Positions 15,535-64,000 of a stretch of DNA of 64,000 nucleotides are shown in pieces. The notes beneath the pieces were generated by a model. It had not been told where the DNA came from. It saw nothing but the letters and a program-made list of their open reading frames with translations, and searched no databases. The position numbers and the translations under genes were made by a program. Positions within the stretch are counted from its first letter, which is position 1. Each line of letters begins with the position of its first letter. This DNA is from Phaeosaccion multiseriatum (Eukaryota; Protista; Ochrophyta, other classes), in assembly GCA_965112735.1 (NCBI GenBank), contig OZ218965.1, positions 124,001-188,000 on the forward strand, given 5' to 3'.

Positions 15535-15566
<32 letters not shown>

Positions 15567-18500: not shown

Positions 18501-20690
18501 CAGGCAGATTGCCATCTCGCCAATTCTTAGTAGGCCCTTCACCCCTGCCCCACTGCTCCACAGGCCCGCAGAGGAAGCGGATTGCCCATGAGCCTGCCGC
18601 CGCCGAGCAGGTTTATAGGCAGAGGCGGGTAGAGGCATATGGGGAGGAGCCAGGCCCCGCACCACTCTCTCGAACAGCCCCGGACTGGCGACGGCTCGCA
18701 CCCCGCCCACCTCGATCGTGACTCGCGCGGGCTGCATCACCAACTGCTGCATCACCAGCTGCTGGGGCTGTATCACCAACTGCCGCTGTTGCACGTCCAC
18801 GGCGAGGAACTCAGTAAATTCGCGCCCTCCCTTTGTGTCCCGCCCCTCCGCCCCCGTACCACCAACCCCTGTAGCACCCAACATGCCGAAAGCTGTGGTG
18901 CCAAGCAGCACAGCCTGCTCCCAGTTGCCGTTGATGAGGCGAGAGTGCTCCCACCCTGATAGGGACCCCACGCCAAGGCGCAGCTCCCTCCGAAGCTCCG
19001 AACCAACTGCCGCCGCTGTAGCACCAACTGCTGCAGGTGAAGCCTCCCCTCGCTCGTGGCGCTGGCAGGCTGAGCAGCGCAGGCCCTGGAGCGTGAAAGC
19101 GGCGTCCTTCCCTCTGTCCTTCGCGAAGGGCCCTCGCAGGGTCACCCCCACCACGCGCACATCCAAACGCGCTGTGTGCCATCTCCCCCCCATCCCCTGC
19201 CCTCCTCCTCCTTTGCTCTGCGCCCCTCCTTGCTCCTTCTCCCCATCCTCCTCCTCCTCCTCCTCCTCCTCCTTCCCATCCTCCTCCTCCTCCTCCTCCT
19301 CCTCCTCCTCCTCCTCCTCCTCCTGCTCCTCCTGCTCCTCGCACGCGTCGAACCACACCTCGCCATCCTCCAGCAGCAGACCCTGCGGAGTAGTGCCGCC
19401 GCCCCGTCCACTGCCATCCCCCAGGAGCCTCCATAGCATCTGCACAGACGCCGGGAGAGCATTCAGCATCACAAAGCTCTCCTCGCCCTCCTCCTCGCCT
19501 TCTGCCGCCATCTGTCTACTGCCTGTATCACCACCCCCTCCTGTACCAGAGGCAGCGATTCGGACGTGCAGTGCGACCTCCCCCCCTCCCCCGCATTGAC
19601 TGCCATCCCCCCCCGCCGTTACAGGTAGAGAAACACGCACGTCCGCATCCGTCCTGCACAGCAGAGGAGGGTGGAAAGCGACACCTGGTGTCAGGACGGC
19701 GCTCCTCCCCCTCCTGCCCATATGGCTGCTGCTGCTGCTGCTGGTGGTGGTGGGACTCACGGGGGAGGCGAGCTGGAGCTGGACGCCTCGCAGCTGCACC
19801 GGTACAGCCAGCGCCGTCCTTGCCCTTGTGGCCTCTCCTCCTCCTCCTGCTGCTGGTACTGCTTCTGCTGCTGCGGCTGCTGCTGGTACTGCTTCTGCTG
19901 CTGCTGCTGCTCCTCCTGCTGCGAAGCTCTCCAAGCAGGGTTGACAAGAGAGCGAGTCGGCAGTAAGAGCCGCGATCCCCCCACCCCCCTGTGGAGAAGA
20001 GGACGAGGATGTGAAGGACACCGACACGCTCCGGATGATGACGTGTACCCGCCCCAGCAAAAGCTTCTGCAGACCGGCCATCACCACGGAACGCCGCTTT
20101 CCAGAGGGAGCACCCCCTTGCCCCCCCGTTGACCCCCTGGATCCATTCTCCGCCGTTCCTCCTTCCTCATGAGCTGGGGAGGTGAGGCGTGGCTGTACAA
20201 GCTCCCCTCCCCCCCACAGCACGAGGTCTACGCCTTCCACCTCAACGACGATGACCGGGCTGCGCATGAGGCTGCGCAAGGCCAGTCGCACTGAGACCTT
20301 CGCTATCTGCGCCGTGTCCACGCTCACTGCCGCGAGGCCCAGCCACCTACCCACCACGCTGCCACGGAGCGCGAGGTGGGAGATGCTGAGGCTGCACCAG
20401 CCCACTGAAGCGTCCACGACACCACCTCGACAGTCTTCATCAGAGCCTGGACCACTTCTCGCGTGCACAGCAGCATCGTCGCCGAAGAAGCTGCCTTGCT
20501 GTGCTGCGGCTGCTGGTCCAGCACAGGACCCTGTTGAAGAAGACGGCGCTGTGGCTCCTCCTCCCCTCCCCCGACCGAGCATCCACCAGAGGCGCTCCAC
20601 ACGAGAGGGTGGAGGCTTGCTAGGTAGGTCCAGGACATCCCACACGGGCTCAGGAAGAAGCAGGGCCAGCACATAGTTTAAGAAGAGCAT
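1..20690 (-). CDS. VPS13: VPS13-family bridge-like lipid transfer protein, multi-exon, 3' end beyond window start
   Basis: Chorein-N-like start (SLSISHLALR...AQIAKVSVRLALRSLMRSPVIVVEVEGVDLVL), WEPLLE motif, and VAB/SHR-BD repeat motifs (PYLLRNRCG, YCKLWVVNRTEMTLHYR, WSEPFDV, LGLHVERGKGAFSRSTVLTFVPRYVLVN, WSGSFKPDNLGEVPLKLR, PPYRVDNLTSHRIRYRQ, YTWDEP). PH-like segment at ~1110-1330. Exon 1 is 20690-15197 (5.5 kb). Junctions checked at 15197 and across intron 6521-3489 keep frame; not every junction was checked. Confidence 0.85.
3527..6415. repeat. 2.9-kb intronic hexamer-based satellite (ACAGAG and variants)
   Basis: Continuous ACAGAG/AGAGAG/TCAGAC/ACATAC/ACAAAG/GCAGAG/ACAGTG/ATAGAG modules inside VPS13 intron 3489-6521. 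Confidence 0.97.
8281..8690. repeat. ~34-bp intronic minisatellite (gggatggcagtggacaggcaatggacagggcaaag-like), about 11-12 copies
   Basis: Tandem units directly visible in a VPS13 intron. Confidence 0.92.
14226..14340. repeat. ~33-bp tandem repeat (gggggtgtcaggacacacaaggcggtagaaag-like)
   Basis: About 3.5 tandem copies in a VPS13 intron. Confidence 0.88.
14910..15082. repeat. ~43-bp tandem repeat (accccgtacttgcatgcccatatgacagtcgtactctcctgac)
   Basis: Four tandem copies in VPS13 intron 1. Confidence 0.9.
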
Positions 20691-21469
20691 AGATCTCCCC
20701 TCGGAATACTCTCTGTCCTACTCTCGAGAAGGAAGAAATATTCCCAATATCTTTCTCTCCCTCTCTGTCTCTCTCTTTGACGTGCCTACCCTTGGCATCG
20801 TCCGCTACTCTGCCGCTTCCCCTGTTCCCCCACTGCACCCCGCAGTCTTCTGCTGATCATCTCTCTTGATCAAAAGAAGAGGATTTCTCGGATTCGCCAG
20901 CATTTGTCATCTGTAATCATACTGTATGTGTAATGCCCTTACTTTCCCCGACGGCGGAATCCTTTCCTTTTTTTCAAGGCTTTTCACAATTTTATTCTTG
21001 TCTGACCTTGACCTGACCCAGAAGAGCGAGGGGAGCCTGAATCACTTCTTGAATAGTGGTATGAGGAGTGTCTATTACCACAAAGGCACGAAAAGGCGGG
21101 GGGGCTCACCATAATGTAGTCGTCGTTGTCGAACTGCTCATGAAGTTTTCTGTTTGTCTCTGTTGTCCCCTCTCTCCCTCCCTCCCCCCCTCCCTCCCTC
21201 CCTCCCTCCCTCCCTCCCTCTCTTTATCTCTGTCCCTCTATCTCTGTCTCTCTATCTCTGTCTCCGTCTCTGTGCAAGTGTTCCGCCTCTTTCCTGGCCG
21301 TGCCTCGCGATGTGCTTTCCATGCTGTTCACGCTGCTGGTTTTGCTCTTCCTTCCGTCCTGTACCACCACAGCGATGAACTGGACTAGCTAAGGAGCGGA
21401 AGCGACAAGTTGCTTGTTGAACACAGTTCGCCTTCTTAAGGAGCCGGTGGGCTGCCCCCCTCGAGCATA

Positions 21470-33295: not shown

Positions 33296-41561
<8,266 letters not shown>

Positions 41562-41759
41562 GCGATCAGAGCCAAAGGGCCAACGTCAGGGCCAGGCTCG
41601 TGCTCAAGGTCGGGGTCGGGGTCAGGGTCAGGGTCAGGGTCAGGGTCAGGGTCAGGGGCAGGCTCAGGAGACACTCGGTGTGTTGCTGCGGCGCTTCTGC
41701 GGCTTTGGCCTCGGACCCTCACAAGAGCCTTGCGCACGACGATGGCAGTTGGTGATACA

Positions 41760-41985
41760 GCAGCAGCAGCAGCAGTTGGTGATACAGCAGCTGCAGCAGC
41801 AGTAGCAGCAGGTGGTGATACAACAGAAGCAGCAAGGGCCTGAACACGACGATGGCGGTCCTTATGCTCTCCAGCATGTGCAGAATACAAAATAGCGCTA
41901 CCGCTCACTCGCTTGGTGAACAGAGCGGCGGAAGACGCGAGAGACTCGAGAGGGGAGGGGGGCTTGCCTGTCCGTCTTACACAGT
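41760..41985 (+). repeat. Left direct repeat (ArgRS 3' flank) bounding the ROCO-TIR island
   Basis: Near-identical to 51218-51445. The core aatagcgctaccgctcactcgcttg...cttgcctgtccgtct also occurs at 57588 and 60209. Confidence 0.9.
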
Positions 41986-42118
41986 GGGGGACTGTGGAGT
42001 AGGCCACTCGTTCATGCCCAATCGGAAACCCGAGGCACCGTTTCAATATACTTTACTCTCGTTCGGTCCATAAAAAGCTTTGGCGCTTCTCTCGCTTCTC
42101 TCCCTCTCTATCTGAGGG

Positions 42119-45100
42119 TTACGACTTAGAATGTATCGTCGTCAATACCCCTTCCACCTCGTTGGCCACTCTCTTGGCGAAAGCAAACAGATCTTCTTGC
42201 CGGTCATCGCGGAGACCTGTGTTTTTATCCACACGCCCCAGCAGGTCTTTCGCAAGCTCATCCGCTGTCTTGAACTTGTCCTTCTCAAGCCAACCCCAAT
42301 CCCCTCCCTTCCCTTTGCTCCACTCCTCCCATGTCTCCTTCACGCCGGGATTGTTGTCTTCTAATTTGCCTGTGTCCCAGCATTCCTCAACCGTCAGCCC
42401 GAAGAATAGCGGCACCAGCGCTGCTCCCCCCTTCTCCGCCCTGTCCATGAAGATTTGCATCTCCTCAAGAGGCCACTCTCGGCACACAAAGTCTGGGCTC
42501 AGCACCACCACGCCAATCGGGGCGGTACGGGCAACGTGGAGCATCTTGTGCTCTGCGCGGTCTCCTGCCTCCAGGCTTCTCTCGTCCAAGAAAGTCGGAA
42601 TTCCTCTCTGCCACAGACATCTGTGAAGCAGATACACAATGCCCCGCTTCTCCGGCCCGGCGTGGCTCAAGAAGACTTGGTACCCCTTACCGTCGCTCAT
42701 TTCAATAGTCTCGACGTTGGGAAGCCCGTCTCGCGCGTTCTGCAGGGATTCCTTTGAGACAAGAGAGGGACAAGAGGAATTCGTCGGCATCAGAACACAA
42801 AGGTTTGCCCGGAGAGCAAAGTCGTCAACACAGACCTACTGAGCCTCGTACCTGGTATTTCTCGAAACCTTTCACACAAGTCCGGAGTGTAACGAAAGCC
42901 TCCCCTTCAAACTTGTCGCACAAAGTCTTCCACTCGCCTCTAAAGCAATCCGTGGCCAGAGTCGGCGGCGCCCACCGGGGGCTCAAGACGGGTGTAGCGA
43001 TCAGCCGCTCGACATCATATTCAGACAGCAGGCCCCGCTCGTTTGTGTGTGCATCAGCTTTCCGCGATGGATCCAGCACACACCCGAATTGCTGAAGGTC
43101 TCCCTGTTTCCGTCCCAAAACACACAGGTTATGATGTATGTGAGCCGCACGCAAGCTGAGAGCAACACTTACCGGCACGAGAGAAGCCTCGACAATTGTT
43201 AATTAAACAAGCAAGGTGTGTACAACCAACAACCAACATCCCCCCCTCCTCTCTCTTACCTCACGGAGCGGCCCCCACTCTTCTTTCAGGGGATCCTTGG
43301 CCACGTACACGGCTGTCCACGGGCACTTGTGGGAGGAGAGATGGTGGACCGTGTGCCGGAGCAGCATGCCCATCGCAACGGTCGGGAAAGAGTCGCACTT
43401 GGTGGGTGCAGTGTTGACGACGTGCAAAAAAAAACGAGTATAAGCAAAACTTGGAGAATCAGAGTGACGGCACGGTGAGTACATCAGGCCACGCATATGA
43501 CGCCCGTTCCTCTTCCTCACCTGCTTCTCCTCTTCTTCCCACTGACCAGCCACCTTCAGGTACAAGCGTTGCTCCGTCCAGTCATAGCTGACGAAGGCCA
43601 TGTACGCCTGTTGGGCATCGACGAACAACGCCCCTTGCCTCCAGCCAACCGCCACCTCACCGAGTCCCTTGGTGGAGAGAGTAGACACCAGCCTGGCAAT
43701 GGTCCCGGGGGGAGGGGGCCGCTCCAGCTGGAGGTACACCTGCTTCAAGTAACCCCCTACCTTCATCTCCTGGCTGATCGCATCTGCCGCATTCTTTAAT
43801 GCCTGCGCTCGCTCGTTCGAGCTGTCCATCGCATCTGGCATGCGGAGGGAGACCACAAATTGGAGCTCTTGCTCCTTGGCACGAGTGCCACCACCATTGA
43901 CCCCTTCCCCCCCTCCCGGGGTATTGTCGTGCTCAGCCTTCTCAAAAATGATGCCCAGGTCCACCAACCTTCCCAGCAGAGCCTTCACGTGTTGTTGGTC
44001 GAAAGTCCTTCCCCCGTCCCCCCCGTGACGAAGAAGAACAGCGTTCCACACGGATCCGGCAAAACCAATCGTCAGCACCCCATCCTTCTTGAGTTTGTTG
44101 GCAGCATTCCTGTCAAGTTCAAGAGCAGAAGAGCCGTCTGGTTGCGTCTCATACTGTCGCTTAGGCTTCAGTCCAAGTCTCTGCGATGATCCATTAGGCG
44201 GGGGGCAGAAATCAAGACAATACCGAGGATAAGACAGGTTGTGGCAAACGAAAGAAAGTGTGCAGCAGGTGGTGGAACATGTGAGACGGAGGGCGTATCA
44301 TCTTTACACTCTTGCCGCGTTTCATCCTTTTGTATCTTTCTTTCCCCTCCCTCCCACGCACCAGCCGCACACACACACCTTGCTGCGACCCAGTCGCACT
44401 TCAACACCGTCGGTAACGATGTCACCGGCCGGAGTCAGGAGCGGACTGATCAACTTGGAAAACAAGGCCGCCTCTGTAAGAACAACGGCTGCACCAGTCT
44501 TCACGTCTCCAGCCACCACAAGCCTTCCGTCCCTTTCCCTGCAGGGAGGGGGCACGATGAGTGTTACAATGAGTGAGAAACGAACAGGGCAAACCCCCTG
44601 GATACGTCCTCTTCTCCCTCTGCCTAAGGGATAACCGTGCCCATATTTCGAATCATATTCAGTCCAAGCAACAGCCAACCTTGGGAGTATCAACCGTGCC
44701 CCAGCCAAGCGCACTTAATTCCCACTCACTCACCACTCACTCACCACTCACTCGCCCCGAGCGCGGTATTCACTTACATCATTGTCACCGCGCACGTGAG
44801 CATCACATCACACAGGGGCTGCTCGGCTCGGCCCTGCTGCTCCTCCTCCCAGGTCTTTTTCACTTCGCCCATTGTCAGGAAGACGTGCTCCTTCGCCAAG
44901 TCGCCCAGCAGGGCCACTGCTTTCTCGAGAATAGGACCCACGACGTAGGTCTGAGCCAGGTCCTGCAACGCCCGTGTCAGAGCCATTAACTGCTGCTCCC
45001 GCCCTCCCTTCTTCTCGCAGCTCGTCATGAACGGCCTTTCATCCAGCACGAGTGATCGTCCCCCTTGCAGTTTGCCTTGTAAATCGGCGTGAATTTGGGC

Positions 45101-48100
45101 CCATTGCGCCTCCAAATCTCCTTCCCCCCGCCCCTCCCTGACCCTGTCGCATTTATTGGCTACTAAGAGCACAGGGGACTCCGAAGCGCCGTGCTGGAGC
45201 ATGTCCATTAAGGGCTCCAGCTGCTCCCCTTCCCAATCGTCGGGCGGACTCCAAACCAGCAGGTAGGCCGCTCCTTCCGTGAGAAACATGTTGCTCAAGG
45301 CGTGATAGTCTTGCTGACCACCGCAGTCAAAGAAGCGCAACGTCACCCCCTTAAGATCGCAGCTCTTGATGTCCACACCGACCGTCGACGGCTTCTCTTC
45401 TTTCCCCGTTGCTGTGGGCCGCCCTGCTACGATGCTAAGCATCAAACTGACACAAGCAAGGGACGAAGCGTCGGGGGGGGGGAGGGATGTTGGAAGCTAA
45501 TCAAGAGCAGTGGGTAATAACGAGCCGTATGTATCTTAGTATTTCTCCCCTCCTCTCTCCTGCCCTCGACCTCCTCTGTCGCCCATCGTAGTCAGCTAGA
45601 CAGGACAATGTGACGAAGAGGGCATACTGTACCTGGTCTTGCCTACTGTTGTGGGCCCTAAGAGCATGACCTTGAGGCTCATTACTTCCCTTCGACCCTT
45701 GCGCAAGTCTTGGAAGTACTTTTGCGCCATGACCCATCCTTGCTCTAACACCCCAACTGGCGGGTACTGCAGCGGGTTATCTCTCACGTAAAGGCGGCGA
45801 ATCCAGCGACCCTCGTCCGGGCAAAATTTGAGTATCCAATCTTCACTCGTGTCCGTAGCAAAGCCTGCAGGCAAGGGCACGACGCGAGTAGAGCGGCGGA
45901 GGATGGGCGGTGGTCTTTAAAGGCGGTAGGGGCTTATTTCCCGTCACCACGGAGCAGGACCACTCAGAATTGGCTCTCATCGAAAATCTCGCCACGTTCC
46001 CTACCCAAGTATCAAGTGGAAGGGACGCGAGCGGGCATGCTACCACTCACCAGTGAGCTTGTTGTTGTTGAGGTTCAAATTCGCAAGCTTGCGCAGACTT
46101 CCAAGCTCCCTTGGAATAATCCCTGCGGATGGGAGGAAAGTTCTTTGGTCAAACTCATATCAAGTGAAAGGGACGCGAACGGACCACTCGCCAGTGAGCT
46201 GATTGTTGTTGAGGTACAGTCCCGTAAGGTTCTGAAGACCTCCAAGCTCGGGCGGAGGGAAGTTTTTTGTCATACGACTTTCAAGCGAAAGGGGCGCGAA
46301 CGGTTGTGCGTACCACTCACCAGTGAGCGAATTTTGGCTGAGGGACAGTTTCTCAAGGTTCTGAAGACCTCCAAGCTCGGGTGGAATACTCCCTGCAATG
46401 GGAGGAAAGGTCAGCCATACTCATATCAAATGAAAGGGGTTCGCGTACGAGCCACTCACCATTGAGCTTATTGTAGCTGAGTTGCAGCATCTCAAGGTTC
46501 TGAAGACCTCCAAGCTCGGGTGGAATGCTCCCTGCAATGGGAGGAAAGAGTTCTTTGGTCATACTCATATCAAGTGAAAGGGACGCGAACGGGTGTGCGT
46601 ACCACTCACCAGTGAGCTGATTGTTGTTGAGGGACAGTCTCTCAAGGTTCTGAAGACCTCCAAGCTCGGGTGGAATACTCCCTGCGGATGGGTGGAAAGT
46701 TCTTTGGTCATACTCATATCAAGTCAAGGGGACGCGAACGGGTGTGCGTACCGCCTACCTTCTAGATTGTTCTCCTTGAGCGATAGTTCTCGAAGGTGTG
46801 AAAGTTGGTCAAGCTGCGGCGGAATGCTCCCTGAGATGTGGGGGAAATTCTTCAGCCATACTAATATCAAGTCAAGGAGACGCGAGCGGGTTCGCGTACC
46901 ACTTACCGGTGAGCTTATTGCGGGAGAGGCCCAATTGCTCAAGGTTCTCCAGACTTCCAAGCTCGGATGGAATGCTCCCTGCGGATGGGACAAACTTTGT
47001 TTGGTCACAATCATCTCAAGCGAAAGTGACGCGAACGGGTACGCATACCACTTACCAGTGAGCTTGTTGTGGGAGAGGCCCAATTGCTCAAGCTTCTCCA
47101 GACTTCCAAGCTCTGGTGGAATGTTCTCTGCGGAGCGGAGGACAGTTCTTCGGTCATACTCATATCAAGTGAAAGGGACGCGACCGGGTGTGCGTACCAC
47201 TCACCAGTGAGCTTGTTGTTGCGGAGGCCCAAAACCTCAAGCTTCTCCAGATGTCCAAGCTCGGGTGGAATGCTCCCTGCGGATGGGAGGGAAGTTCTTT
47301 GGTCATACGACTACCAAGCGAAAGGGAATACTCCACGTGGAGTGAGAGAGGGAGTCATACGACTACCAAGCGAAAGGGCCGCGAACGGGTTCGCACACCA
47401 CTTACCAGTGAGCTTGTTGTGGGAGAGGCCCAAAACCTCAAGCTTCGCCAGACGTCCAAGCTCGGGTGGAATGATCCCTGCGGATGGGAGGGAAGTTCTT
47501 TGGTCATACTCATATCAAGTGAAAGGGACGCGAACGGGTGCGCGTACAACGTACCAGTGAGCTTGTTGTAGGAGAGGATCAAAACCTCAAGCTTCTTCAG
47601 ACTTTCAAGCTCCATTGGAATGCTCCCTGCGGAGCGGAGGGAAGTTCTTCGTCACACGCTTATCAAGCGAGAGGGACGCGAACGGGTTCGCGTACCACCT
47701 ACCGCTGAGCTGGTTGGTCCACAGGTTGAGCACCGTCAGGTTCTCAAGACTTCCAAGCTCTGGTGGGATGCTCCCTGCGGATGGGAGGAGAGTTCTATTG
47801 TCACACTAATTCCAAGTCAGAGGGACGCGAACGGGGTGCGCGTACCACCTACCTTCTAGATTGTTCGCGTTGAGCGAGAGATGTCGAAGCTCTGCTTGCT
47901 TCCCCAACTCCTTGGGAATGTTCCCTGCGAAGCGGAGGAAGGTTCTCTGGTCACACTAATACCAAATCAAAGGGACGCGAGCGGGTGTGCGTCCCACTTA
48001 CCAGTGAGCTTGTTGTCGGAGAGGACCAAAACCTCAAGCTTCTTCAGACTTTTAAGCTCCCTTGGAATACTCCCTGCGGAGCGTAGGGAAGTTCTTCGTC

Positions 48101-49678
48101 ATACACGACTATCAAGCGAAAGGGACGCGGACGGGTTCGCGTACCACTCACCAGTGAGCTCGTTGTGGGAGAGGCCCAATTGCGCAAGCTTCTCCAGACT
48201 TCCAAGCTTCCTTGGAATGCTCCCTGCGAAGCGGAGGGAAGTTCTTTGGTCATACTCATACTAAGTGAAAGGGACGCGACCGGGTGTGCGCACCACTTAC
48301 CAGTGAGCTTGTTGTGGGAGAGGCTCAAACTCTCAAGCTTCTTCAGACGTCCAAGCTCGGGTGGAATGCTCCCTGCGGATGGGAGGAAAGTTCTGTGGTC
48401 ATACTAATATCAAGTGAAAGGGACGCGAACGGGTGTGCGTACCACTCACCAGTGAGCTCATTGTCAAAGAGGCTCAGAACCTGAAGGTTCTTCAGATCTC
48501 CAAGCGCGGGCGGAATATTCCCTGCGGAGCGGAGGAAAGTTCTTGGTCATACTCACATCAAGTGAAGGGGACGCGAACGGGTACGCGTACCACTCACCAG
48601 TGAGCTTGTTGTCCCTCAGTGTGAGCCACGTCAAGTTGGTCAGATCTCCCAACTCCTTGGGAAGGTTCCCTGTGGATGGAAGGAGAGCTCTTTGGTCATA
48701 CTAATATCAAGTCAAGAGGACGCGAACGGGTTCGCGTACCACCTACCTTCTAGATTGTTCCGATCGAGCCGTAGTTCTTGAAGGTTTGAAAGCTTGCCAA
48801 GTTGCGGAGGAATACTCCCTGAGATGTGGGGAAAGCTCTTCAGCCATACTAATATCAAGTCAAGCCAAGGGGACGCGAACGGTATGCGTACCACTTACCG
48901 CTGAGCTGATTGCCGCCGAGTTTCAGCAGCGTAAGGATCTGCAGACTTCCGAGCTCCTCGGGAATGCCCCCTGCGTATGGGAGGAGAGTTCTTTTGGTCA
49001 CACTAGTATCAAATGAAAGGGGGGAGAACGGTTGCGCGGACCACTTACCAGTCAGCTTGTTGTCGGAGAGGCCCAATTTCTCAAGCTTCTCTAGACTTCC
49101 AAGCTCGGGTGGAATGCTCCCTGCGGATGGGATGAAAGTTCTTCAGACATATAATGTCAAGTCAAGAGGACGCGAACGGGTGCTCGTGCCACTCATCAGT
49201 GAGCTGATTGTTGTTGAGGGACAGTCTCTCGTGACCTTCAAGCTCTGGTGGAATCCTCCCTGCGGAGCGGGGGGAGCTCTTTGGTACACGAAGTGTAAGG
49301 GACGCGAACGAGTCGCTGGACTACCACGTCATGCCCCTGCCTCACACTCCTCTTGCCCCTCTTTGCTTCGTCCTTCCCTAATATTCTAGACCCATCACAT
49401 GAAGGAAAGAGAGAGAGAGAACTTTACCCCCCCCCTTCTGAATACGACGCATTCTTCAGGACGTAAGGCACAACAACCATCATCACGTCTCTCCTACCTT
49501 CGAGGCCGTTGCTTCCGAGGTCAAGCTCCACCACATAGTCATTTTCCAGGCTCACTCCGAACCAGTTCTCCAAAGATGCGTCCGCGTTCCATCCCGCCTT
49601 GTTAGACCAAGCGGGTCCGCTCGTCGCGTGAAAGACGTCTGTGAGTATTCTACGCTGATCCTCGAGGACACTAGACAT
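42119..49678 (-). CDS. LRR-ROC-COR-TIR (ROCO GTPase with C-terminal TIR domain)
   Basis: Exon 1 (49678-49498) is an LRR N-cap (QRRILTDVFHATSGPAWSNKAGW...LENWFGV...VVELDLGSNGLEG), followed by 20 intact 72-nt LRR exons. ROC motifs: GPTTVGKT|S, STVGVDI, DCGGQ, VLLVANKCD, TSC. COR-like exons 44538-44379, 44180-43521, 43397-43260 and 43103-42852. TIR exon 42751-42119 (YQVFLSHAG...TFLDERSL...VVVLSPDFVCREWPLEEM). All junctions GT-AG and in frame. Confidence 0.92.
46192..46256 (-). pseudogene. Broken LRR cassette (acceptor and exon 5' end deleted, donor GC)
   Basis: LRR sequence ...PELGGLQNLTGLYLNNNQLTG is joined directly to intron sequence without the cag acceptor. The donor reads GCGAG. Confidence 0.8.
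49197..49259 (-). pseudogene. Broken LRR cassette (63 nt, donor GT>AT)
   Basis: GRIPPELEGHERLSLNNNQLTG carries a 9-nt deletion, and the donor reads ATGAGT. Confidence 0.8.
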
Positions 49679-51217: not shown

Positions 51218-51445
51218 ACAGCAGCAGCAGCAGCAGTTGGTGATACAGCAGCAGTAGCAGCAGGTGGTGATACAACAGAAGCAGCAAGGGCCTGAACACG
51301 ACGATGGCGGTCCTCATGCTCTCCAGCATGTGCAGAATAAGAATAGCGCTACCGCTCACTCGCTTGCTGAACAGAGCGGCGGAAGACGCGAGAGACTCGA
51401 GACGGGATGGGAAGGGAGGGGGGCTTGCCTGTCCGTCTAACACAG
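51218..51445 (+). repeat. Right direct repeat bounding the ROCO-TIR island
   Basis: Near-identical to 41760-41985. Confidence 0.9.
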
Positions 51446-52537
51446 AAGGAGAAGGAGTAGCTCAGTTTTAATGTGTTCATTCTCTTTGATTTTTGATTTA
51501 AGATCCTTCATACAAGGTGGATACTGTACCTGTTCGCTTATCTACACATCCCCCACCCCCTTCGCCTGAGCCCGCGCGACCAAGGCCGCCGTCCGCGCCC
51601 CTCGGCTCCGCCATGCCCATATGCCTCTGCTCAAATATGCCCATATGCCTCTGCTCAAATATGCCCATACGCCTCTCCTCTTCCCTTCCCATCCTCCTTT
51701 TTACTATTGACTATTGGGCCCTTACTTGGGCCGGGCCTCGTCCGAGCTGGTGGGTTGACCTGAGGGCGTTTGTTGGCTTACTGGGGTGGAGGGCGTTTGT
51801 TGGCTTACTGGAGTGGGCGTTCGCTGACCTGCCGGCCGTTCCTCCTTTACGGGCGGCAGGCACTGCAGCTGATGACCACCCCGGCCCATACACCTCCCGC
51901 TGGACTGCCTGCCTATATGCCTGTCGCCGCTGGGGACGACACTCTCGTGCTTCCCCTGCTGCGGCGTCTCCAAGCGCTCTCCGCTCGGAGGGAGGCTCTC
52001 GTCGTTGTCCATTGAGAGGTGCTGTATGCCCAACTGCTGTACCACCCACTGCTTCGTCTCCCCCCCGTACGGCCCCACTGTTGCCCGCCTCCCTTCCTGC
52101 GTCGGTCCCCCGGTGGGTGCCCCTGCCCCTGACCCATGCAATGCCCTTGCCCCTCCTGCCGCCCCCACCCCCATCAGCTCCTCTACGGAAGGACTGCTCG
52201 CAAGAAGAGCGAGGGTGTCGTGACTGCGGCTGGGAGAGGGGGAGCTGCTGATGGACTTTCTTTGCCTCAGTCTGAGCTTCCTCCTCACCACCCCCCCACC
52301 CCCCCCCCCAGCTCCCTCCTCTGGAGGGCTTTGCGCTGTGAGGGGTCCGCTGAGTGCGAGCTCGAGAAGACCCTTCTCGTGCAACGCGAAACAGGAGCTG
52401 CAGCCGCCCAAACAGCGCCCGTGGCTGAAGAGCTGGGGCACTGGACAAGAGAGGGGGGAGGAGGGAGAGGGAGCGTCAGGGGGAGGGTTTCGACAACACA
52501 CACCGCACACCCTCTCCTTTCATCGGGCCTCGGGGAG

Positions 52538-52650
52538 CACCGATGGCCCATATGCCTTAGCACTGATGGCCCATACGACTTAGCACTGATGGCCCATATG
52601 CCTTAGCACTGATGGCCCATACGACTTAGCACTGATGGCCCATATGACTT
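52538..52650. repeat. 23-bp tandem repeat cttagcactgatggcccatatgc
   Basis: About 5 copies here; the paralogous array at 61321-61500 has about 8. Confidence 0.9.
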
Positions 52651-53834
52651 ACCTGTGGCGATGCCAGTCATTTTGGTGAGCTCGAGCTGCAGGGGGACAC
52701 CCCCCCCGGGGAGCTCGTCGAACTGCCAAAAGAGAGCGGAAGAGAGAAGGAGAGAGAGAGTGACAAACAGAGAGGCAGACAGAGAGGGATAGAGAGACAC
52801 ATCAGTAAGGCAGAAAGAGAGAGAACTATTCAGGCTTGTGAGCGAAGACGATGGCACCCCACGGCCGTACGAGGGGCGTTGGTGGTCCAGACAGTTGTCA
52901 TCTGTTGCATCGATCCCAAGGGCTCTCTCTCTCTTCATTGTCGCTCCTTATCTCCCCATTCGCTTGTCTCCCTGCCCCTCCCGAGAAGCTCTCACCTGCA
53001 CCACAGTGAACTCCACCTTAAGGTTGTGCAACAAGTCCAACAAGCGGTTGCTGCGACAGGGAGGGGGGGCGTCGAGAGGAGTAGGGGTGGGCGTAAGGGT
53101 GGTGGGCACAGATAGTAAGGAGGACTTGAGGAGGACGAGGTCAGGAGGCAGGCGAGAGGAAGACACCCTCTCCACAAGGAGTGCCGAATGGCCAACAACG
53201 AGGGCACAAACCTGAAGGAGCAGTAGCTCTTGCCGAACACCACGACGTCGTTCTTGGCCACTTGCTCCTTCAGCCACCACCGCCATGTGGCCGGGTCCTG
53301 ACACCAACCAGCGTTTTCACAGAGCAGAAACAAGTGTATGGGCATGAGAGAGCTGACACCAGCACCACCAAGAGGACTTTGGTCAACCTCCCTCCCGAGC
53401 AGCACGTGCTGAGAACGTTCCTCGAGGACATCACCCTCCCCTGAGAATGTTCTGCGAGGACACCCCCCTCCCCCACAACACCCTGGTGCTGACTGTGGTG
53501 GACTGTGGTGATGACTGTGGGCATCCCTTCGTAGCTACTGGGGGCCATGGCCAGGCAGTCATTAGCTTATTGCGCTGTACCACTCCTCACCTGATCGAGC
53601 TCCGCGAGTGTGGCAAATCGGTCCGAAATCTCCTCCCAGCTGCCCCTCTCGTTCATCACCCACTGCCGCGAGAGGAAGACAGTGGACACACATAAGACAC
53701 GGGCCGTGAGGAGAAGGAGAGAGAAAGAGAGAGAAAGGGAGGGGGGGGGTGGGGGAGGCTCTGGACAGAGAGAGAGTACACTACATCAGAGCAGAGCAGA
53801 GCACGCATGACGCACGGTACTGAGGAACTCAGGG

Positions 53835-54462
53835 ACTGACTGACTGACAGACTGATTGACTGACTGACTGACTGACTGACTGACTGACTGACTGACTGAC
53901 TGACTGACTGACTGACTGACTGACTAACTGACTAACTGACTGACTGACTGACTCACTGACTCACTGACCGACTGACTGACTGACTGACTGACTGACTGAC
54001 TGACTGACTTCACTGACTGACTGACTTCACTGACTGACTGACTGACTGACTGACTGACTTCACTGATTGACTGACTGACTGACTGACTGACTGACTGACT
54101 GACTGATACTGACTGACTGACTGAGGGCCTGACTGACTGACTGACTGACTGACTGAGTGATACTGACTGACTTACTGACTGACTGAGGGCCTGACTGACT
54201 GACAGACTGGCTGACTGACTGACTGACTGACTGACTGAGGGCCTGACTGAGGGCCTGACGGACTGACTGACTGACTGACTGACTGACTGATACTGACTGA
54301 CTGACTCACTTAGGGCCTTGACTGACTGACTGACTGACTGACTGACTGACTGACTGACTGACTGACTGTGACTGACTGACTGACTGACTGACTGAGAGAC
54401 TTGACTGACTGACTGATTGATACTGACTGACTGACTGACGGACTGACTGACTGACTGACTTC

Positions 54463-54494
<32 letters not shown>

Positions 54495-54705
54495 CCTGCC
54501 TGCCTGCCTGACAGACTGACAGACTGACAGACTGACTGAGTGACTGACCGACCGACTGACTGACTGACTGACTGACTGACTGACAGACTGAGGGCCTGAC
54601 TGACTGACTGACTGACTGACTGACTGACTGACTGACTGGCTGCCTGACTCACTGACTCACTGACTGACTGCCTGACTGACTGACTGACTGACTGACTGAC
54701 TGACT

Positions 54706-54739
<34 letters not shown>

Positions 54740-54740
54740 G
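53835..54740. repeat. (TGAC)n intronic microsatellite
   Basis: About 900 bp here, versus about 90 bp at the paralogous site 62640-62730. Confidence 0.95.
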
Positions 54741-55501
54741 AGCCTTGACGGACCCCTCTCGCGGCGCCCCCCCCCGCACCTGTCTGCCTGCGCTCTGCCG
54801 TGTGTCGCTGCCCGGCTGGCTGCTCTGGTCCGTACTCTGGTCTGGGCTCTCGCTCTCCATGTACTTGACGAGCTTGGGGCCCGAGGTGGACGTGTCCTTA
54901 TTCTCCGAGTTCTCGATCCACGCCACGAAGTCCACCTGCGCATGCACACACACGCGCACACACACACACACGCACACACGCATACACACAAACGCACACA
55001 CACATACACACACGCACACACGCACACACACACGTGCCCGCGGGCGCGGCATTCGGCAGTGGAGCGACAGAGACATACGTCATGAAACGCCATGGCAGGA
55101 AGGGTCATGGCGGTAAGAGCTTTGGCGGGAAGGGCTTTGGCGGGAAGGGCTCACGCTCCCTCTAGTCCTTATCACTCCTCGGTGGCCCAACCTGTGTACG
55201 CCCAACCTGTGTATGCCCAAACAACCCCACCCGTGCATGGCCCTGCCCGCCCCGCTGCTGCCGACAGTTTCACTCACCTTGTGCATGAGCTTCTCTACGG
55301 TGAGGGGCACCTTCTGCAGCGAGTCCTCGATCTCCTCCTCGGGCACGAAACGGCCCGTCTGCTCGCCGCGCTCCTTGGCCCTTCGAAACACACACTCGCG
55401 GTCGGCGAACACGTAGAGAATGGCGATGCGGTAGTGGGGGCGCTTCAAGCGGATCTGTCGGAACACGATCTGCGTGGGCACAAACACACACACGTACATA
55501 C

Positions 55502-55703
55502 TCGGCCCCTGACATGCTTCTGAGGCGACCCTGCTTCCTGCTTCTGGCCGGCGCCAGCCGGCCAGGCAGGTTCCAGGTTCTGGGGGAAAGCCATGTAATA
55601 AGGCAATGATGAGGGCCAAGGCTGGTTCCTGCTTCTGGCCGGCGCCAGCCGGCCTGCTTCCTGCTTCTGGGCTGGCCTGTCTCAGAAGCATGTCAGGGGC
55701 CGA
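55502..55703. mobile_element. MITE (202 bp, 23-bp TIRs, 6-bp TSD ACATAC)
   Basis: TCGGCCCCTGACATGCTTCTGAG (55502-55524) and its exact reverse complement (55681-55703). ACATAC at 55496-55501 and 55704-55709. Absent from the paralogous intron near 63445. Confidence 0.92.
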
Positions 55704-57186
55704 ACATACAAACGCTCTGTCAGAAGGGGCCGATGCGCTTCTGTCTGCAGACGGACGGCTCTCTCTCTCGCTCTCTTTCTCTCCCTCTCTGGCTCTCTTT
55801 CTCTCTCTTGCTCTCGTTCTCTCTCTCTCTCTTTCTCTGTCTGTAGCTATGTCCGTCTTTCCCTCCCCCTGCGGCGGGGAGAGTGCGCAGCCCTCATCCC
55901 TGGCGACCCCACACACGCACGCACGCACGCACCTCATACCACTCTGCATCCCTTAGGCTGCCATCGACCCACACGTTCTTCTGCCTCTCCATAGCAACCT
56001 CCTGCGCAGACAAGGGGGGGGGGCACGCACGAGGCAGCGGGTAGAGAGCGGCAATACCAATGTCAAGCAATGGCAATGTCAATGTCAAGCAATGGCAATG
56101 TCAATGTCAAGCAATGGCAATGTCACGGGGTCAAGCTTTTGGGGTCAGCGGGTACAGTGCAAGGTGTCAGGACAGCGGGTACAGTGCAAGGTGTCGGGAC
56201 AGCGGGCACAGTGCAGGGTGTCAGGACAGGGGGGGCGTGTCACTGACTGCGCTACTGACTGCGCTGGTGACCAACTTATTGACAGATTGACTCAATGACT
56301 GACTGACAGACTCGAGAACTGACTGACTTACTGGCCGACCGACCCACCGACCGACCGACCGACCCACCGACCGACCGACCGACCGACCGACTGACTGACT
56401 GACTGACTGACTGACTGACTGACTGACTGACTGACTGACTGACTGACTGACTGACTGACTGACTGACTGACTGACTGACCTGCGCAATTTCGATCATGAA
56501 GCCGCTCTCGAGCCTAGTCCTGTTGCCGGCCTCGTTGGGGCACGTCTTGAGGTAAAGCTTCCACTCGGGAAACGACATCTTGAGCATGTCGGGGTCCAGC
56601 TGAGGACAGGAGGGGGGGAAGGCAGGGGCGTTGGGGGGTCAGGGAGGGAGGATGGCAGTGGATGGCAAGGGGCAGGAGCAGAACAAACAAGAGGGCGCCC
56701 CATCGCCCGGAGAGGGAGGGATGGCAGTGGATGGCAGTGGACGTGAGTGAGTACGTGCGTGGGTGGGTGAGTGAGTGAGTGTGTGAGGGATTGAGTGAGT
56801 CAGTCAGTCAGCGAAAGAGTGAGGGAGTAAGTGAGGCTGTGAGTGAGTGAGCCAGTGAGTCAGTCAGCGAAAGAGTGAGGGAGTAAGTGAGGCAGTGAGT
56901 GAGTGAGTGAGTGAGCCAGTGAGTCAGTAAGTGGGCCAGTGAGTCAGTAAGTGAGCCAGTGAGTCAGTTACTAGTGAGTGGGTGAGTGGGGGGGGGGGGG
57001 GAGATGTGAGTGAGTGAGTGAATTAAATGTGACACGATGTCTCTGACGCTGTATCACCACTGCTGCTTTGTGCATGGCCCTGTCCCGTCGGTGATACAAA
57101 ACGGGCACCTCCCACCCACCGTCCTGAAACCCCCTACCCGCTGTCCTGACACCCCCAACCCCCACGCTCCCGTGTTGGTGCTACAT

Positions 57187-57276
57187 AACGGGCGCCTCCT
57201 GCTGTGCCAAGCCACGAAGCGAGCCATGGGCACATGCTTCGAGCTGCTCGGCATCAAGCCCCTGGAGCGTATCTAA
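57187..57276 (+). pseudogene. Duplicated ArgRS terminal exon (pseudo-exon)
   Basis: Copy of NGRLLLCQATKRAMGTCFELLGIKPLERI*. The acceptor gatacag is mutated to gctacat. Confidence 0.88.
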
Positions 57277-57897
57277 GCGATCAGGGCCAAAGGGCCAACG
57301 TCAGGGCCAGGCTCATGCTCAGGGTCAGGGTCAGGGTCAAGGTCAGGGTCAAGGTCAGGGGCAGGGTCAGGGGCAGGCTTAGAAGACACTCGGTGTGTTG
57401 CTGCGGCGCTTCTGCGGCTTTGGCCTCGGACGCCTCACAAGAGCCTTGGGCACGACGATGGCAGTTGGTGATACAGCAGCAGCAGTTGGTGATACAACAA
57501 CAACAGCAGCAGCAGTTGGTGATACAACAGAAGCAGCAAGGGCCTGAACACGACGATGGCGGTCCTCATGCTCTCCAGCATGTGCAGAATAGCGCTACCG
57601 CTCACTCGCTTGCCGAACAGAGCGGCGGAAGACGCGAGAGGGGAGCGGAGGGGAGGGGAGGGGGGCTTGCCTGTCCGTCTATCACAGAATGAGTGATTTA
57701 AGATCCTTCATACAGGGTGGATACCCTCAACAGGATATGTTAAGGGGGGACTGTGGAGTAGGCCACTCGTTCATGCCCAATCGGAAACCCGAGGCACCGT
57801 TTCAATATATTTTACTCTCGTTCTGTCCGTGAAAAGCTTTGGCGCCTCTCTCTCTCTCTCTGACTAAGGGTGGCTGGGGACTTGCAATCGGTGAGGG

Positions 57898-58780
57898 TTA
57901 CGACTTGGAATGTAACGTCGTCAATGCCCTTGCCACCTCGTTGGCCGCTCTTTTGGCGAAGGCAAACAGATCCTCTTGCCGGTCATCGCGGAGACCCGTG
58001 TGTGCACCCACACGCCCCAGCAGGTCCTTCGCAAGCTCATCCGCTGCCTTGAACTTGTCCTTCTCAAGCCAACCCCAATCCCCTCCCTCCCCTTTGCTCC
58101 ACTCTCCCCATGTCTTCTTCACGCAGGGATGGTTGTCTTCTAATTTGCCCGTGTCCCAGCATTCCTCAACCGTCAGCCTGAAGAATAACGGCACCAGCGC
58201 TGCTTCCCCCTTCTCCGCCCTGTCCATGAAGATGTGCATCTCCTGAAGAGGCCACTCTCGGCACACAAAAGACGGACTCAGCACGACCACGCCAATCGGG
58301 GCGGTGTGGGCAGCGTGGAGCATCTTGCGCTCGGCGCGGTCTCCTGCCTCCAGGCTTTTCTCGTCCAAGAAAGTCGAAATTCCTCTCTGCCACAGACATC
58401 TATGCAGCAGAGACACAATGCCCCGCTTCTCCGTCCCGGCGTGGCACAGGAAGACTTGGTACCTCTTATCGTCCCTCGTTTCAATGTCGTAAAGCCCGTC
58501 TCGCGCCTTCTGCAGGCATTCCTTTGAGAGAAGAGAGGGACAAGAGGAATTCGTCGGCATCAGAACACGGATTTCCCCCCCCCCCCTTTTTAACGTTTAT
58601 CTCGCTCCCTCGTACCTGGTACTTGTTGAACAGGTCCACACAAATCTTTCGTGCAACGTTGGCATCATCTCTAAATTTGCCATAGACCCTTGAGAGAAGC
58701 CCCCACAACTGGTTTTTAATCGTGCGGAAAATGTCATAAAAAAAAGTCCAAGAGGAGGCCGAAAGGCCCATCCGTTCCAT
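57898..58780 (-). CDS. Stand-alone TIR-domain protein (two exons, ~262 aa) or truncated ROCO paralogue
   Basis: Exon 58780-58616 (MERMGLSASSWTFFYDIFRTIKNQLWGLLSRVYGKF...FNKYQ|GT) splices in frame to an intact TIR exon 58521-57898 (YQVFLCHAG...WPLQEM), paralogous to 42751-42119. Confidence 0.7.
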
Positions 58781-59074: not shown

Positions 59075-60535
59075 AGGCGAACCTTTAGCACGGCTGTTCT
59101 TCTGTTGTAGACTGTCTGGCACGCGAGCAACTTTGCACACGTTCGGATTAGGTACCAATGGAGGGCATTGCTGCTCATCTCGACTGGCATCTGGCTTAGG
59201 TCGGGCGGTGGAGGCAATGCTGTGTGGGCGGATTCCAACGGCAATCTATGGCATTCTGCCCACGGCGTCTTCTTTCGGCTGTAGGCTCCGCGTCTGCGCA
59301 CTCGTATCGTCCCTGCTGGCCGCGTTGGGGATGGGGTTGTTCAGATGCACCGGTGGGGCTGCGCAACCAGTCCCACGCCTTGTGGGAACTGGCGGTTCGG
59401 ACAAAATGACGGAGCTGGAGGGGAAGGACGTTGTCTGGCATTTTCTCCTGGACACACAGCGTAGGCAAGCCCCTGGCGGAAGAGAGGAGTGCAGTGATCA
59501 GTAGACATAGGGAGAAGCAGACGGCGCAAAGTGGGCAGGAGAACGACGGAGGGGGGGGCAAGGGAGGAGGACGCGGGGCAGCACCGACAGCGACGGCGTG
59601 GCCCCTTTGGGGGGCGGTGCCAACGCGCCACCCAGCGCCCTTGGCGCCGATTGCGGCTCGAACCTCGGAAGCATCGCGCACGGCACGGCCAATGGCAAGA
59701 GGCGCCACAGCACCGGGAGCGGCAGCAGGAGCTGCTCCGTCCAACCGCCGCAGGGAGGGAGGGGGGCAGTGCTGCCAGAGGGCCCATGGAGTGGCATCAT
59801 GGCGTTTTTTCGTGACTCCGGCTCTCTCTGCTGGTAGTGGGGGGCAGCCCCACGCAGCCGGAGGCGCACGTGACACCCGTCAACTGCGTGCTCGTCGACG
59901 TCACCGCGTGGGCGCAGAGTAAGGGTATAGGTTTATGTCCGTCTTGAAGCACTTTTTCACTTTTTCCACCCGCCGGATGGAAAGGGCGCCCTGTTTACCC
60001 TTGCTGACGGGTCTGTGGGCGGTGCTGGCCTCATTGCAGATGGAGGGTCGGCCCCGGAGCCACCTGCCAAGCAGCCGAAGACGGGTGGCGCGCAGAGGAC
60101 AGATGCCCCCCTCCCATGCCGTGGGGTACTGGCAATCGAGTTCGGTCCTTCCGTCATCAAGCGGGCTAGTGAGAGGCTTACTGAGATTTCCAGGGGGGCC
60201 GTAAGCGAAATAGCGCTACCGCTCACTCGCTTGCCGAGCAGAGCGGCGGAAGACGCGAGAGACTCGAGACAGGGGGGCTTGCCTGTCCGTCTTAGAAGGA
60301 GTAGTTCAGTTTTATTGTGTTCATTCTCTTTGATTTTTGATTTAAGATCCTTCATACAAGGTGGATACCTGTTCGCATATCTACACATCCCCCACCCCCT
60401 TCGCCTAAGCCCGCGCGACCAAGGCCGCCGTCCGCGCCCCTCGGCTCCGCCATGCCCATATGCCTCTGCTCTAATGTGCCCATACGCCTCTGCTCGTGAC
60501 TTCCCCCCCCCTTTTTCCTATTGACTATTGGGCCC

Positions 60536-63500
60536 TTACTTGGGCCGGGCCTCGTCCGAGCTGGTGGGTTGGCCTGAGGGCGTTTGTTGGCTTACTGGGG
60601 TGGGCGTTCGCTGACCTGCCGGCCGTTCCTCCTTTACGGGCGGCAGGCACTGCAGCTGATGACCACCCCGGCCCATACACCTCCCGCTGGACTGCCTGCC
60701 TATATGCCTGTCGCCGCTGGGGACGACACTCTCGTGCTTCCCCTGCTGCGGCGTCTCCAAGCGCTCCCCGCTCGGAAGGAGGCTCTCGTCGTTGTCCATT
60801 GAGAGGTGCTGTATGCCCAACTGCTGTACCACCCACTGCTTCGTCTCCCCCCCGTACGGCCCCACTGTTGCCCGCCTCCCTTCCTGCGTCGGTCCCCCGG
60901 TGGGTGCCCCTGCCCCTGACCCATGCAATGCCCTTGCCCCTCCTGCCGCCCCCACCCCCATCAGCGCCTCTACGGAAGGACTGCTCGCAAGAAGAGCGAG
61001 GTTCTCGTGACTGCGGCTTGGAGAGGGGGAGCTGCTGATGGACTTCCTTTGCCTCAGTCTGAGCTTCCTCCTCACCACCCCCCCACCCCCCCCAGCTCCC
61101 TCCTGTGGAGGGCTTTGCGCTGTGAGGGGTCCGCTGAGTGCGAGCTCGAGAAGACCCTTCTCGTGCAACGCGAAACAGGAGCTGCAGCCCCCCAAACAGC
61201 GCCCGTGGCTGAAGAGCTGGGGCACTGGACAAGAGAGGGGGGAGGAGGGAGAGGGGGCGTCAGGGGGAGGGTTTCGATACCACAAACCGCACACCCTCTC
61301 CTTTCATCGGGCCTCGGGGGGCACCGATGGCCCATATGCCTTAGCACTGATGGCCCATATGCCTTAGCACTGATGGCCCATATGACTTAGCACTGATGGC
61401 CCATATGCCTTAGCACTGATGGCCCATATGACTTAGCACTGATGGCCCATATGCCTTGGCACCGATGGCCCATATGCCTTAGCACCGATGGCCCATATGA
61501 CATACCTGTGGCGATGCCAGTCATCTTGGTGAGCTCGAGCTGCAGGGGGACACCCCCCCCGGGGAGCTCGTCGAACTGCCAAAAGAGAGAGCGGAAGAGA
61601 GAGGGAGAGAGAGAGCGACAAACACAGAGGTAGACAGAGAGGGATAGAGAGACACATGAGTAAGGCAGAAAGAGAGAGAACTATTCAGGCGTGTGAGCGA
61701 AGACGATGGCAACCCACGGCCGTACGAGGGGCGTTGGTGGTCCAGACAGTTGTTATCTGTTGCATCGATCCCAAGGGCTCTCTCTCTACATTGTCGCTCC
61801 CAATCTCCCCATTCGCTTGTCTGCCTGCCCCTCCCGAGAAGCTCTCACCTGCACCACAGTGAACTCCACCTTAAGGTTGTGCAGCAAGTCCAACAAGCGG
61901 TTGCTGCGACAAGGAGGGGGGGCGTCGAGAGGAGGGAGTGGGAGTAGGGGTGGTGGGCACAGATACTAAGGAGGACTTGAGGAGGACGAGGTCAGGAGGC
62001 AGGCGAGAGGAAAAGACCCTCTCCACAAGGAGTGCCGAATGGCCAACAACGAGGGCACAAACCTGAAGGAGCAGTAGCTCTTGCCGAACACCACGACGTC
62101 GTTCTTGGCCACTTGCTCCTTCAGCCACCACCGCCATGTGGCCGGGTCCTGACACCAACCAGCGTTTTCACAGAGCAGAAACAAGTGTATGGGCATGAGA
62201 GAGCTGACACCAGCACCACCAAGAGGACTTTGGTCAACCTCCCTCCCGAGCAGCACGTGCTGAGAACGTTCCTCGAGGACATCACCCTCCCCTGAGAATG
62301 TTCTGCGAGGACACCCCCCTCCCCCACAACACCCTGGTGCTGACTGTGGTGGACTGTGGTGGTGACTGTGGGCATCCCTTCGTAGCTACTGGGGGCCATG
62401 GCCAGACAGTCATTAGCTTATTGCGCTGTACCACTCCTCACCTGATCGAGCTCCGCGAGTGTGGCAAATCGGTCCGAAATCTCCTCCCAGCTGCCCCTCT
62501 CGTTCATCACCCACTGCCGCGAGAGGAAGACGGTGGACACACACAAGACACGGGCCGTGAGGAGGGGGAGAGAGAAAGAGAGAGAAAGGGAGGGGGGGGG
62601 GTGGGGGGGGGTTATTATGACGGTACTGAGGAACTGAGGGACTGACTGACTGACTGCCTGACTGACTGACTGACTGACTGCCTGCCTGACTGACTGCCTG
62701 CCTGACTGACTGACTGACTGATTGACTGACCCCTCTCGCGGCGCCCCCCCCCGCACCTGTCTGCCTGCGCTCTGCCGTGTGTCGCTGCCCGGCTGGCTGC
62801 TCTGGTCTGTACTCTGGTCTGGGCTCTCGCTCTCCATGTACTTGACGAGCTTGGGGCCCGAGGTGGACGTGTCCTTATTCTCCGAGTTCTCGATCCACGC
62901 CACGAAGTCCACCTGCGCATGCACACACACACACCCACACACACCCACACACACACACACACACACACGTGCCCGCGGGCGCGACATTCGGCAGTGGAGC
63001 GACAGAGACATACGTCATGAAACGCCATGGCAGGAAGGGTCATGGCGGTAAGAGCTTTGGCGGGAAGGGCTTCGGCGGGAAGGGCTCACGCTCCCCCTAG
63101 TGCTTATCACTCCTCGATGGCCCAACCTGTGTATGCCCAACCTGTGTACGCCCAACCTGTGTATGCCCAAACAACCCCACCCGTGCATGGCCCTGCCCGC
63201 CCCGCTGCTGCCGACAGTTTCACTCACCTTGTGCATGAGCTTCTCTACGGTGAGGGGCACCTTCTGCAGCGAGTCCTCGATCTCCTCCTCGGGCACGAAA
63301 CGGCCCGTCTGCTCGCCGCGCTCCTTAGCCCTTCGAAACACACACTCGCGGTCGGCGAACACGTAGAGAATGGCGATGCGGTAGTGGGGGCGCTTCAAGC
63401 GGATCTGTCGGAACACGATCTGCGCGGGCACAAATACACACACACATACACACACACAGTCAGAAGGGGCCAATGTGCTTCTGTCTGCAGATGGACGGCT

Positions 63501-64000
63501 CTCTCTATCTCTTTCTGTGTGTGTGTGTCCGTCTGTCTCTCGCCCTGCGGCGAGGTGAGTGCGCAGCCCTCATCCGTGGCGACCCCACACACGCACGCAC
63601 GCACGCACCTCATACCACTCTGCATCCCTTAGGCTGCCATCGACCCACACGTTCTTCTGCCTCTCCATGGCAACCTCCTGCGCAGACAGGGGGGGGGAGC
63701 ACGCACGAGGCAGGGGGTAGAGAGCGGCAATGTCAATGTCAATGTCAATGTCAATGTCAATGTCAATGTCAATGTCAATGGCAATGTCAATGTCAATGTC
63801 ACGGGGTCAAGCTTGGGGTCAGCGGCTACAGTGCAAGGTGTCAGGACAGGGAGGGCGTGTCACTGACTACTCACTGAGCTGGCTGACGAACCTATTGACA
63901 GGTTGAATCACTGACTGACTGACTGACTGACTGGGGAACTGGCTGACTCACTGGCCGACCGACCGACTGACTGACTGACTGACTGACTGACTGACTGACT
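60536..64000 (-). CDS. Zeta-toxin-like P-loop kinase / glutaredoxin fusion, 5' part beyond window end
   Basis: Same exon series as 51722-56001, from EVAMERQKNVWVDGSLRDAEWYE to SSDEARPK*, with no lesion noticed. Continues past 64000. Confidence 0.82.
61321..61500. repeat. 23-bp tandem repeat (paralogue of 52538-52650)
   Basis: Tandem cttagcactgatggcccatatgc units. Confidence 0.9.

Follow-up and report, generated by a model that had tools for sequence, protein, structure and literature searches.

What gene does a tandem array of equal-length LRR exons belong to, and has the variety of its units arisen over generations, by splicing or afresh in each cell? The array lies in a 64-kb stretch of DNA, termed here the window. 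Exon shuffling and an analogy to agnathan VLRs are already published for brown-algal ROCO proteins, in 2012 and 2024 (PMC3341825, PMC11378527). This copy is set apart by the compactness of the array, a TIR tail with the catalytic Glu position, and tiny introns that are better conserved than silent sites. The locus probably holds a gene, intact and of LRR-Roc-COR-TIR order, that belongs to the brown-algal ROCO lineage with 'type I LRR exons' and is carried by a related alga with short introns.

Gene organization

The predicted gene extends from 49678 to 42119 on the minus strand and comprises 28 exons (Table 1). It has one open frame of 1454 amino acids, with canonical GT-AG sites throughout. 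The gene model was translated to check the frame, and homology searches were done exon by exon. The predicted domain order is LRR array, linker with P-loop, Roc, COR-like region and TIR. That the array forms the N-terminal end of a Roc-COR-TIR gene is absent from the initial annotation.

Table 1. Coordinates of gene and array features in the window
Feature	Position	Strand	Remarks
Predicted first coding exon	49498..49678	minus	ATG at 49678; 60-aa N-cap and partial first LRR; phase-1 donor
Dead LRR unit	49197..49259	minus	63 nt, 9 nt less than an intact exon; acceptor retained; donor AT, not GT
LRR exons 1-19	46321..49120	minus	72 nt, phase 1-1; homologous introns of 67-80 nt
LRR exon starts, units 1-10	49120, 48970, 48818, 48669, 48521, 48372, 48223, 48073, 47924, 47774	minus	
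LRR exon starts, units 11-20	47626, 47477, 47276, 47127, 46978, 46830, 46681, 46531, 46392, 46122	minus	
LRR exon 10	47703..47774	minus	Best-supported mid-exon mosaic; Bonferroni P 0.0014-0.004 with half-intron flanks
129-nt intron	47277..47405	minus	Internal duplication/insertion of intron core
Dead LRR unit	46192..46252	minus	Lacks acceptor and first 11 nt; donor GC; nearest relative unit 46681
LRR exon 20	46051..46122	minus	
Linker exon	45633..45864	minus	Ends in Roc P-loop; intron directly after GKT
Roc GTPase exon	44778..45446	minus	G3 DCGG, G4 NKCD; Pfam Roc 4.9e-11, above cut-off
Predicted COR-region exon 1	44379..44538	minus	Frame continuity; profile match insignificant
COR-region exon 2	43521..44180	minus	hhalign to brown-algal ROCO post-Roc region: probability 92%, E 6.7e-7
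Predicted exon between COR and TIR	43260..43397	minus	Frame continuity only
Predicted exon preceding TIR	42852..43103	minus	Frame continuity only
Last exon, TIR domain	42119..42751	minus	Pfam TIR 4.3e-14

The 60-amino-acid N-terminal cap has no Pfam match; an LRRNT_2-like cap is a feature of the brown-algal type. Pfam COR does not match the second COR-region exon, and this profile also misses the brown-algal proteins. An Atlas search with the COR exon gave weak winged-helix matches only (scores <0.9). The TIR domain keeps the catalytic Glu position of plant and bacterial TIR NADases and is a candidate enzymatic TIR: a Glu aligns with the catalytic αC-helix Glu of 3jrn (plant) and of the bacterial NADase AbTIR (7uwg). 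A simple repeat is found inside an intron at 44718-44756, and was masked in the local self-comparison.

Relationship to brown-algal ROCO proteins

A search of the Roc exon against 1.8 billion representatives returned ROCO proteins. Those matches that align from the very start of the exon come from Ectocarpus, Scytosiphon and Sphacelaria, or else from unnamed sequencing-run contigs; they are also its best matches by BLASTP. Identity to brown-algal Roc is about 40%, and this distance, together with the short introns, suggests an ochrophyte outside the brown algae. A length-limited, uninformative homologous-protein search with the Roc and TIR exons gave no matches, nor did metagenome contigs match the Roc exon or the intron pattern of the array.

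At each of three comparison loci, two from Ectocarpus and one unnamed, an intron directly follows the P-loop GKT and matches the one here in position and phase. In a Roc tree the query falls within a 33-row set that holds all brown-algal rows (SH-aLRT 96), with modest support, as this is a quick tree of 117 columns with long branches in the set. The P-loop intron and the Roc tree support shared descent with brown-algal ROCOs, and the exon register and the best Roc and COR matches agree with this kinship.

The LRR array

Twenty intact LRR exons are found on the minus strand from 49120 to 46051. All 20 are exactly 72 nt and phase 1-1, as the initial annotation had stated, and have AG/GT ends. 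The array has a period of ∼149 nt (exon plus intron), spans 3.3 kb as a whole, and consists of modular, frame-neutral units. The exons are 69% identical pairwise and share the register GxxPxxLxxxxxLxxLxLxxNxLx. The encoded peptides, 24 residues apiece, are all distinct, and the nine xxLxLxx strings listed earlier are all present. An assembly artefact is unlikely, as the 20 units all differ and words of the stretch occur in five sequencing runs from two studies, the best of which may be the source sample.

Two dead units accompany the intact ones. The last 35 nt of the unit at 49197..49259 match the unit at 46681-46610 at 34 positions, a likeness of the 3′ part that had been seen before. No intact LRR exon was found outside the array in a scan of the 64-kb window, and no inverted LRR exon was found.

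Of the 19 introns between LRR exons, 17 are 67-80 nt long, with a typical length of ∼77 nt. The remaining two are 129 nt and 198 nt, the length of the latter being due to the dead unit that it encloses. Homology among introns of ∼78 nt had been proposed, and it is borne out by a pairwise identity of 79% (76% minus the splice ends) versus 36% for shuffled sequences. The array contains 21 matches to a 13-nt intron motif, for which chance alone predicts 1.4 over the full window; 5 further matches, at 2 mismatches, are outside the array. The matches in the array are all on the minus strand, with none on the plus strand.

Intron core columns are 79% identical versus 65% at eight four-fold third positions of framework residues (P ∼0.03, with columns that are not independent). 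This excess is modest, because a looser four-fold measure already gives 73% identity. It fits intron-centred conversion or a splice-signal constraint in introns this short. A conserved intron RNA structure is without support: the predicted hairpin has compensatory changes in 0 of 11 pairs.

Recombination among units

Recombination among the units is significant. Exact 3SEQ-type triplet tests with Bonferroni correction were applied to non-overlapping units, each a half-intron, an exon and a half-intron. Units 1, 10, 13, 14 and 15 are flagged after correction (P 0.001-0.05), which supports the conversion or shuffling suggested in the initial annotation. Units 10 and 15 are flagged when the exposed codons are removed, and nine units when whole introns are added on both sides; in exon-only tests no unit survives correction. 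Most switch points lie within introns or close to them. The clearest mid-exon switch is that of unit 10 (47774): its 5′ half resembles units 15, 18 and 19, and its 3′ half and flanks resemble unit 4. PHI gives a marginal result (P 0.014-0.23), and a GENECONV-like global P of 0.0007 is given little weight, being confounded by rate variation along the unit. Divergence between units does not depend on their distance in the array (rho 0.06, P 0.39).

Units 3 and 16 are alike in a portion of their upstream intron, in exon type and in donor, and their neighbours are unrelated. This likeness would fit a single cassette that has moved or been copied. The exons ending at 48747 and 46759 do share a distinctive intron, as had been reported, which lies upstream of them, and the NNLE end. 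The exons ending at 47853 and 46759 differ at 4 of 30 nt in the 3′ part and at 17 of 42 nt in the 5′ part, in agreement with the earlier description of an NNLE-type end on a different 5′ half.

Among the exons ending at 46610, 46460 and 46321 (units 17-19), the 42-nt 5′ part shows 0-1 differences and the 30-nt 3′ part shows 6-10. Alike 5′ parts with differing 3′ parts had been correctly described, but the half-swapping read into them is not supported. The trio shares uncommon synonymous codons across the 3′ half, and the differences there are amino-acid changes only, at variable positions; it is therefore better read as duplication followed by selected codon change.

Selection on the LRR codons

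The exposed class was set beforehand as repeat codons 15, 17, 19 and 20, those selected in Ectocarpus (PMC3341825). Concave-face codons are under diversifying selection and the leucine framework is under purifying selection. A codon model with three alternative trees gives an omega of 0.03 for the framework and of 4.2-7.0 for exposed codons (LRT P <1e-11), with 1.0 at all remaining codons. Exposed-codon omega is 3.5-4.4 if multi-nucleotide changes are allowed. Given a separate synonymous rate, the exposed class takes a rate of zero and omega = 1 is still rejected (P ∼5e-7); the excess therefore consists of amino-acid changes and does not reflect a locally raised mutation rate.

Overall, exposed-codon omega is 3.5-7, with P <1e-6 under every model, although 23-codon exons and recombination strain codon models, and short, recombining sequences inflate such tests. 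A dN/dS below 1 at exposed positions, which the initial annotation had set against its own reading, is thus not what is observed. Transitions account for 19 of 49 changes at exposed codons, which is no excess (kappa 1.3-1.8).

Proposed mechanism and alternative explanations

Unequal crossover and gene conversion over generations probably account for the array. Each ∼149-nt exon and intron unit would act as a frame-neutral module, and exchange between similar units would duplicate, delete and swap them. The conserved intron core would help this exchange. Selection would fix amino-acid changes on the concave face and retain the leucine framework, and failed exchange events could have left the dead units. 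The resulting diversity would be heritable, lying between loci and strains, and would not be made afresh per cell.

A role as an immune sensor is proposed with less confidence than this evolutionary account. The protein may be a cytosolic non-self sensor in which the LRR solenoid binds a ligand. Binding would switch the Roc-COR GTPase dimer such that TIR domains gather, and the gathered TIRs might signal, NLR-like, by NAD+ cleavage or scaffolding. Neither a ligand nor an immune function has been demonstrated for an algal ROCO (PMC3341825). A bolder proposal, which we regard as improbable, is that TIR-armed LRR-ROCOs form an NLR-like family in a non-brown ochrophyte, with conserved introns as recombination or splicing handles that yield variants in clonal populations through mitotic exchange or regulated skipping.

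Dscam-like combinatorial exon skipping might add much working diversity. It is compatible with exchange over generations, and is possible but doubtful. All 20 exons are phase 1-1, so any subset stays in frame, and both dead units must be left out for the frame to hold. Short introns with canonical sites usually favour constitutive, intron-defined splicing. The 20 exons here have similar canonical sites and introns of ∼77 nt, which argues against regulated skipping, as does the lack of compensatory changes in the intron hairpin. On the other hand, LRR splice variants are found in Ectocarpus ROCOs, with up to nine transcripts (PMC11378527).

It has been proposed for Ectocarpus, by Zambounis et al. 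(PMC3341825), that diversification is somatic. A programmed process in the agnathan VLR style, with cassettes copied or shuffled per cell to give a clonal repertoire, is highly improbable at this locus. Mosaic units and dead cassettes are present and the conserved intron core could guide recombination, but the assembled gene is complete and intron-split, and no donor cassettes are found outside the gene within the window; the 'VLR-like repertoire' of the initial annotation is not sustained. The exposed-codon excess is solely non-synonymous and therefore marks selection over generations; a transition excess at these codons is also lacking. For brown algae there is no report of a somatic ROCO recombinant or of a recombinase (PMC11378527).

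A neutral tandem repeat or decaying gene, with similarity from recent duplication and variation from drift, is largely refuted and very unlikely: two dead units, one rearranged intron and an omega of ∼1 at codons neither core nor exposed are in keeping with it, but the framework omega of 0.03, the absence of any stop or frameshift in 1454 codons, the intact splice sites on 28 exons and an omega well above 1 at four codons predicted beforehand are not.

Comparison with known systems

Agnathan VLRs likewise have 24-amino-acid LRR modules, a hypervariable concave face and patchwork similarity (PMC3308329). However, the germline VLR gene is incomplete with an intron-free coding region, and its somatic assembly draws on hundreds of flanking cassettes with CDA1/CDA2 (PMC3308329). 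With a complete 1454-amino-acid frame and no such cassettes elsewhere in the 64 kb, the locus lacks two hallmarks of a VLR-type system, the incomplete gene and the donor cassettes, and does not qualify as one.

In spider silk genes (Argiope MaSp2, flagelliform), iterated small introns also flank the repeat exons and undergo within-gene homogenisation (PMC9779670). These genes encode structural proteins and their exons are homogenised; the introns are ∼98% alike (PMC9779670), compared with 79% here. At an Ectocarpus ROCO locus, LRR exons lie inside ∼1.9-kb exon and intron repeats that are 91-96% identical. Homologous introns are therefore not unique to this alga.

The TPR-ROCO-TIR protein of Chondrus crispus also has Roc-COR followed by TIR (PMC11378527), but it has a TPR sensor and no one-exon-per-LRR array, and belongs to another lineage. 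The Podospora NWD/HNWD NLRs het-d and het-e are close analogues in having a repeat sensor that undergoes concerted evolution, with four positively selected surface codons per repeat, joined to an NTPase and an effector (PMC1805685). They differ in their WD40 repeats and NACHT NTPase, and in that an allorecognition function has been demonstrated (PMC1805685).

The closest likeness is to brown-algal type I LRR-ROCOs. The 2012 work on Ectocarpus described 72-nt exons with one LRR each, their shuffling, inactivated exons among them, selection at sites 15, 17, 19 and 20 and the VLR analogy (PMC3341825). The work was extended in 2024 to four brown algae, with splice variants and no somatic recombinant found (PMC11378527). 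The locus analysed here has, as these genes do, a 24-amino-acid LRR on each 72-nt exon with an identical register, the LRR-Roc-COR order with Roc after a linker, inactivated LRR exons lying within introns, recombination inside the gene, positive selection at the same four sites and the P-loop intron. It differs in its introns of ∼77 nt, which give a regular 149-nt array and are more alike than silent exon sites. It also differs in that no inverted LRR exons were found; LRR exons on the non-coding strand, present at 19 Ectocarpus loci, are common but not universal (PMC3341825, PMC11378527). Both papers report that TIR is lacking from brown-algal ROCOs and LRR proteins (PMC3341825, PMC11378527); these ROCOs end in a conserved post-COR domain or membrane anchor, whereas TIR is the C-terminal domain here. 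Searches of the open-access literature yielded no account of an ochrophyte LRR-ROCO-TIR.

At 3.3 kb, the array makes the question of 2012, whether shuffling is somatic, germline or at the level of splicing, addressable with one long amplicon. The TIR tail is a candidate signalling output absent from published brown-algal ROCOs. With it, the predicted protein would be a GTPase-switched analogue of TIR-NLRs, and its putative NADase activity can be assayed.

Duplications around the ROCO-TIR gene

The TIR domain of the predicted LRR-Roc-COR-TIR gene (ROCO-TIR gene) has a counterpart elsewhere in the window. This second TIR exon lies in a duplicated block (56774-58568, matching 41046-42798), and its translated sequence is 82% identical to the gene's own TIR. 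Roc, COR and LRR exons were sought upstream of it by tblastn and none was found. A short repeat flanks the gene on either side in direct orientation, with a further copy near the second TIR. Adjoining the gene is also a segmental duplication of 90-97% identity (51342-56175 and 60209-63849).

Features of the ROCO-TIR gene region (window coordinates)
Feature	Position	Strand or orientation	Remarks
Predicted intron of ROCO-TIR gene	43398-43520	(-)	123 nt, in frame, without stop
Second TIR exon	57898-58521	(-)	within duplicated block
~230-nt repeat	41757-41984, 51218-51451, 57474-57693	direct, on both gene flanks; third copy near second TIR	~90% identity

Introns

As one predicted intron is in frame and stop-free, its retention is possible and could add 41 residues to the protein. 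In the repeated LRR exon/intron cassettes (46020-49312), every intron displays a short dyad 3' of the donor, and the donor is able to pair with a conserved mid-intron stretch. Compensatory changes were sought among the cassette introns; none was found.

Other features of the window

An intron-split arginyl-tRNA synthetase gene is present at 33400-40300 (+), with one exon matching PF00750 proteins. Very long open reading frames of up to 1863 amino acids are found at 900-20700 (-), which may represent a VPS13-type giant gene. A 2.9 kb purine-rich satellite of 6/12-nt units spans 3541-6417.

Comparison with Ectocarpus

In the Ectocarpus ROCO locus used for comparison (L001), the LRR exons are contained in ~1.9-kb tandem repeats that are 91-96% identical (locus positions 4000-8850). 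These exons are situated upstream of the annotated gene start and are thus absent from the deposited gene model.
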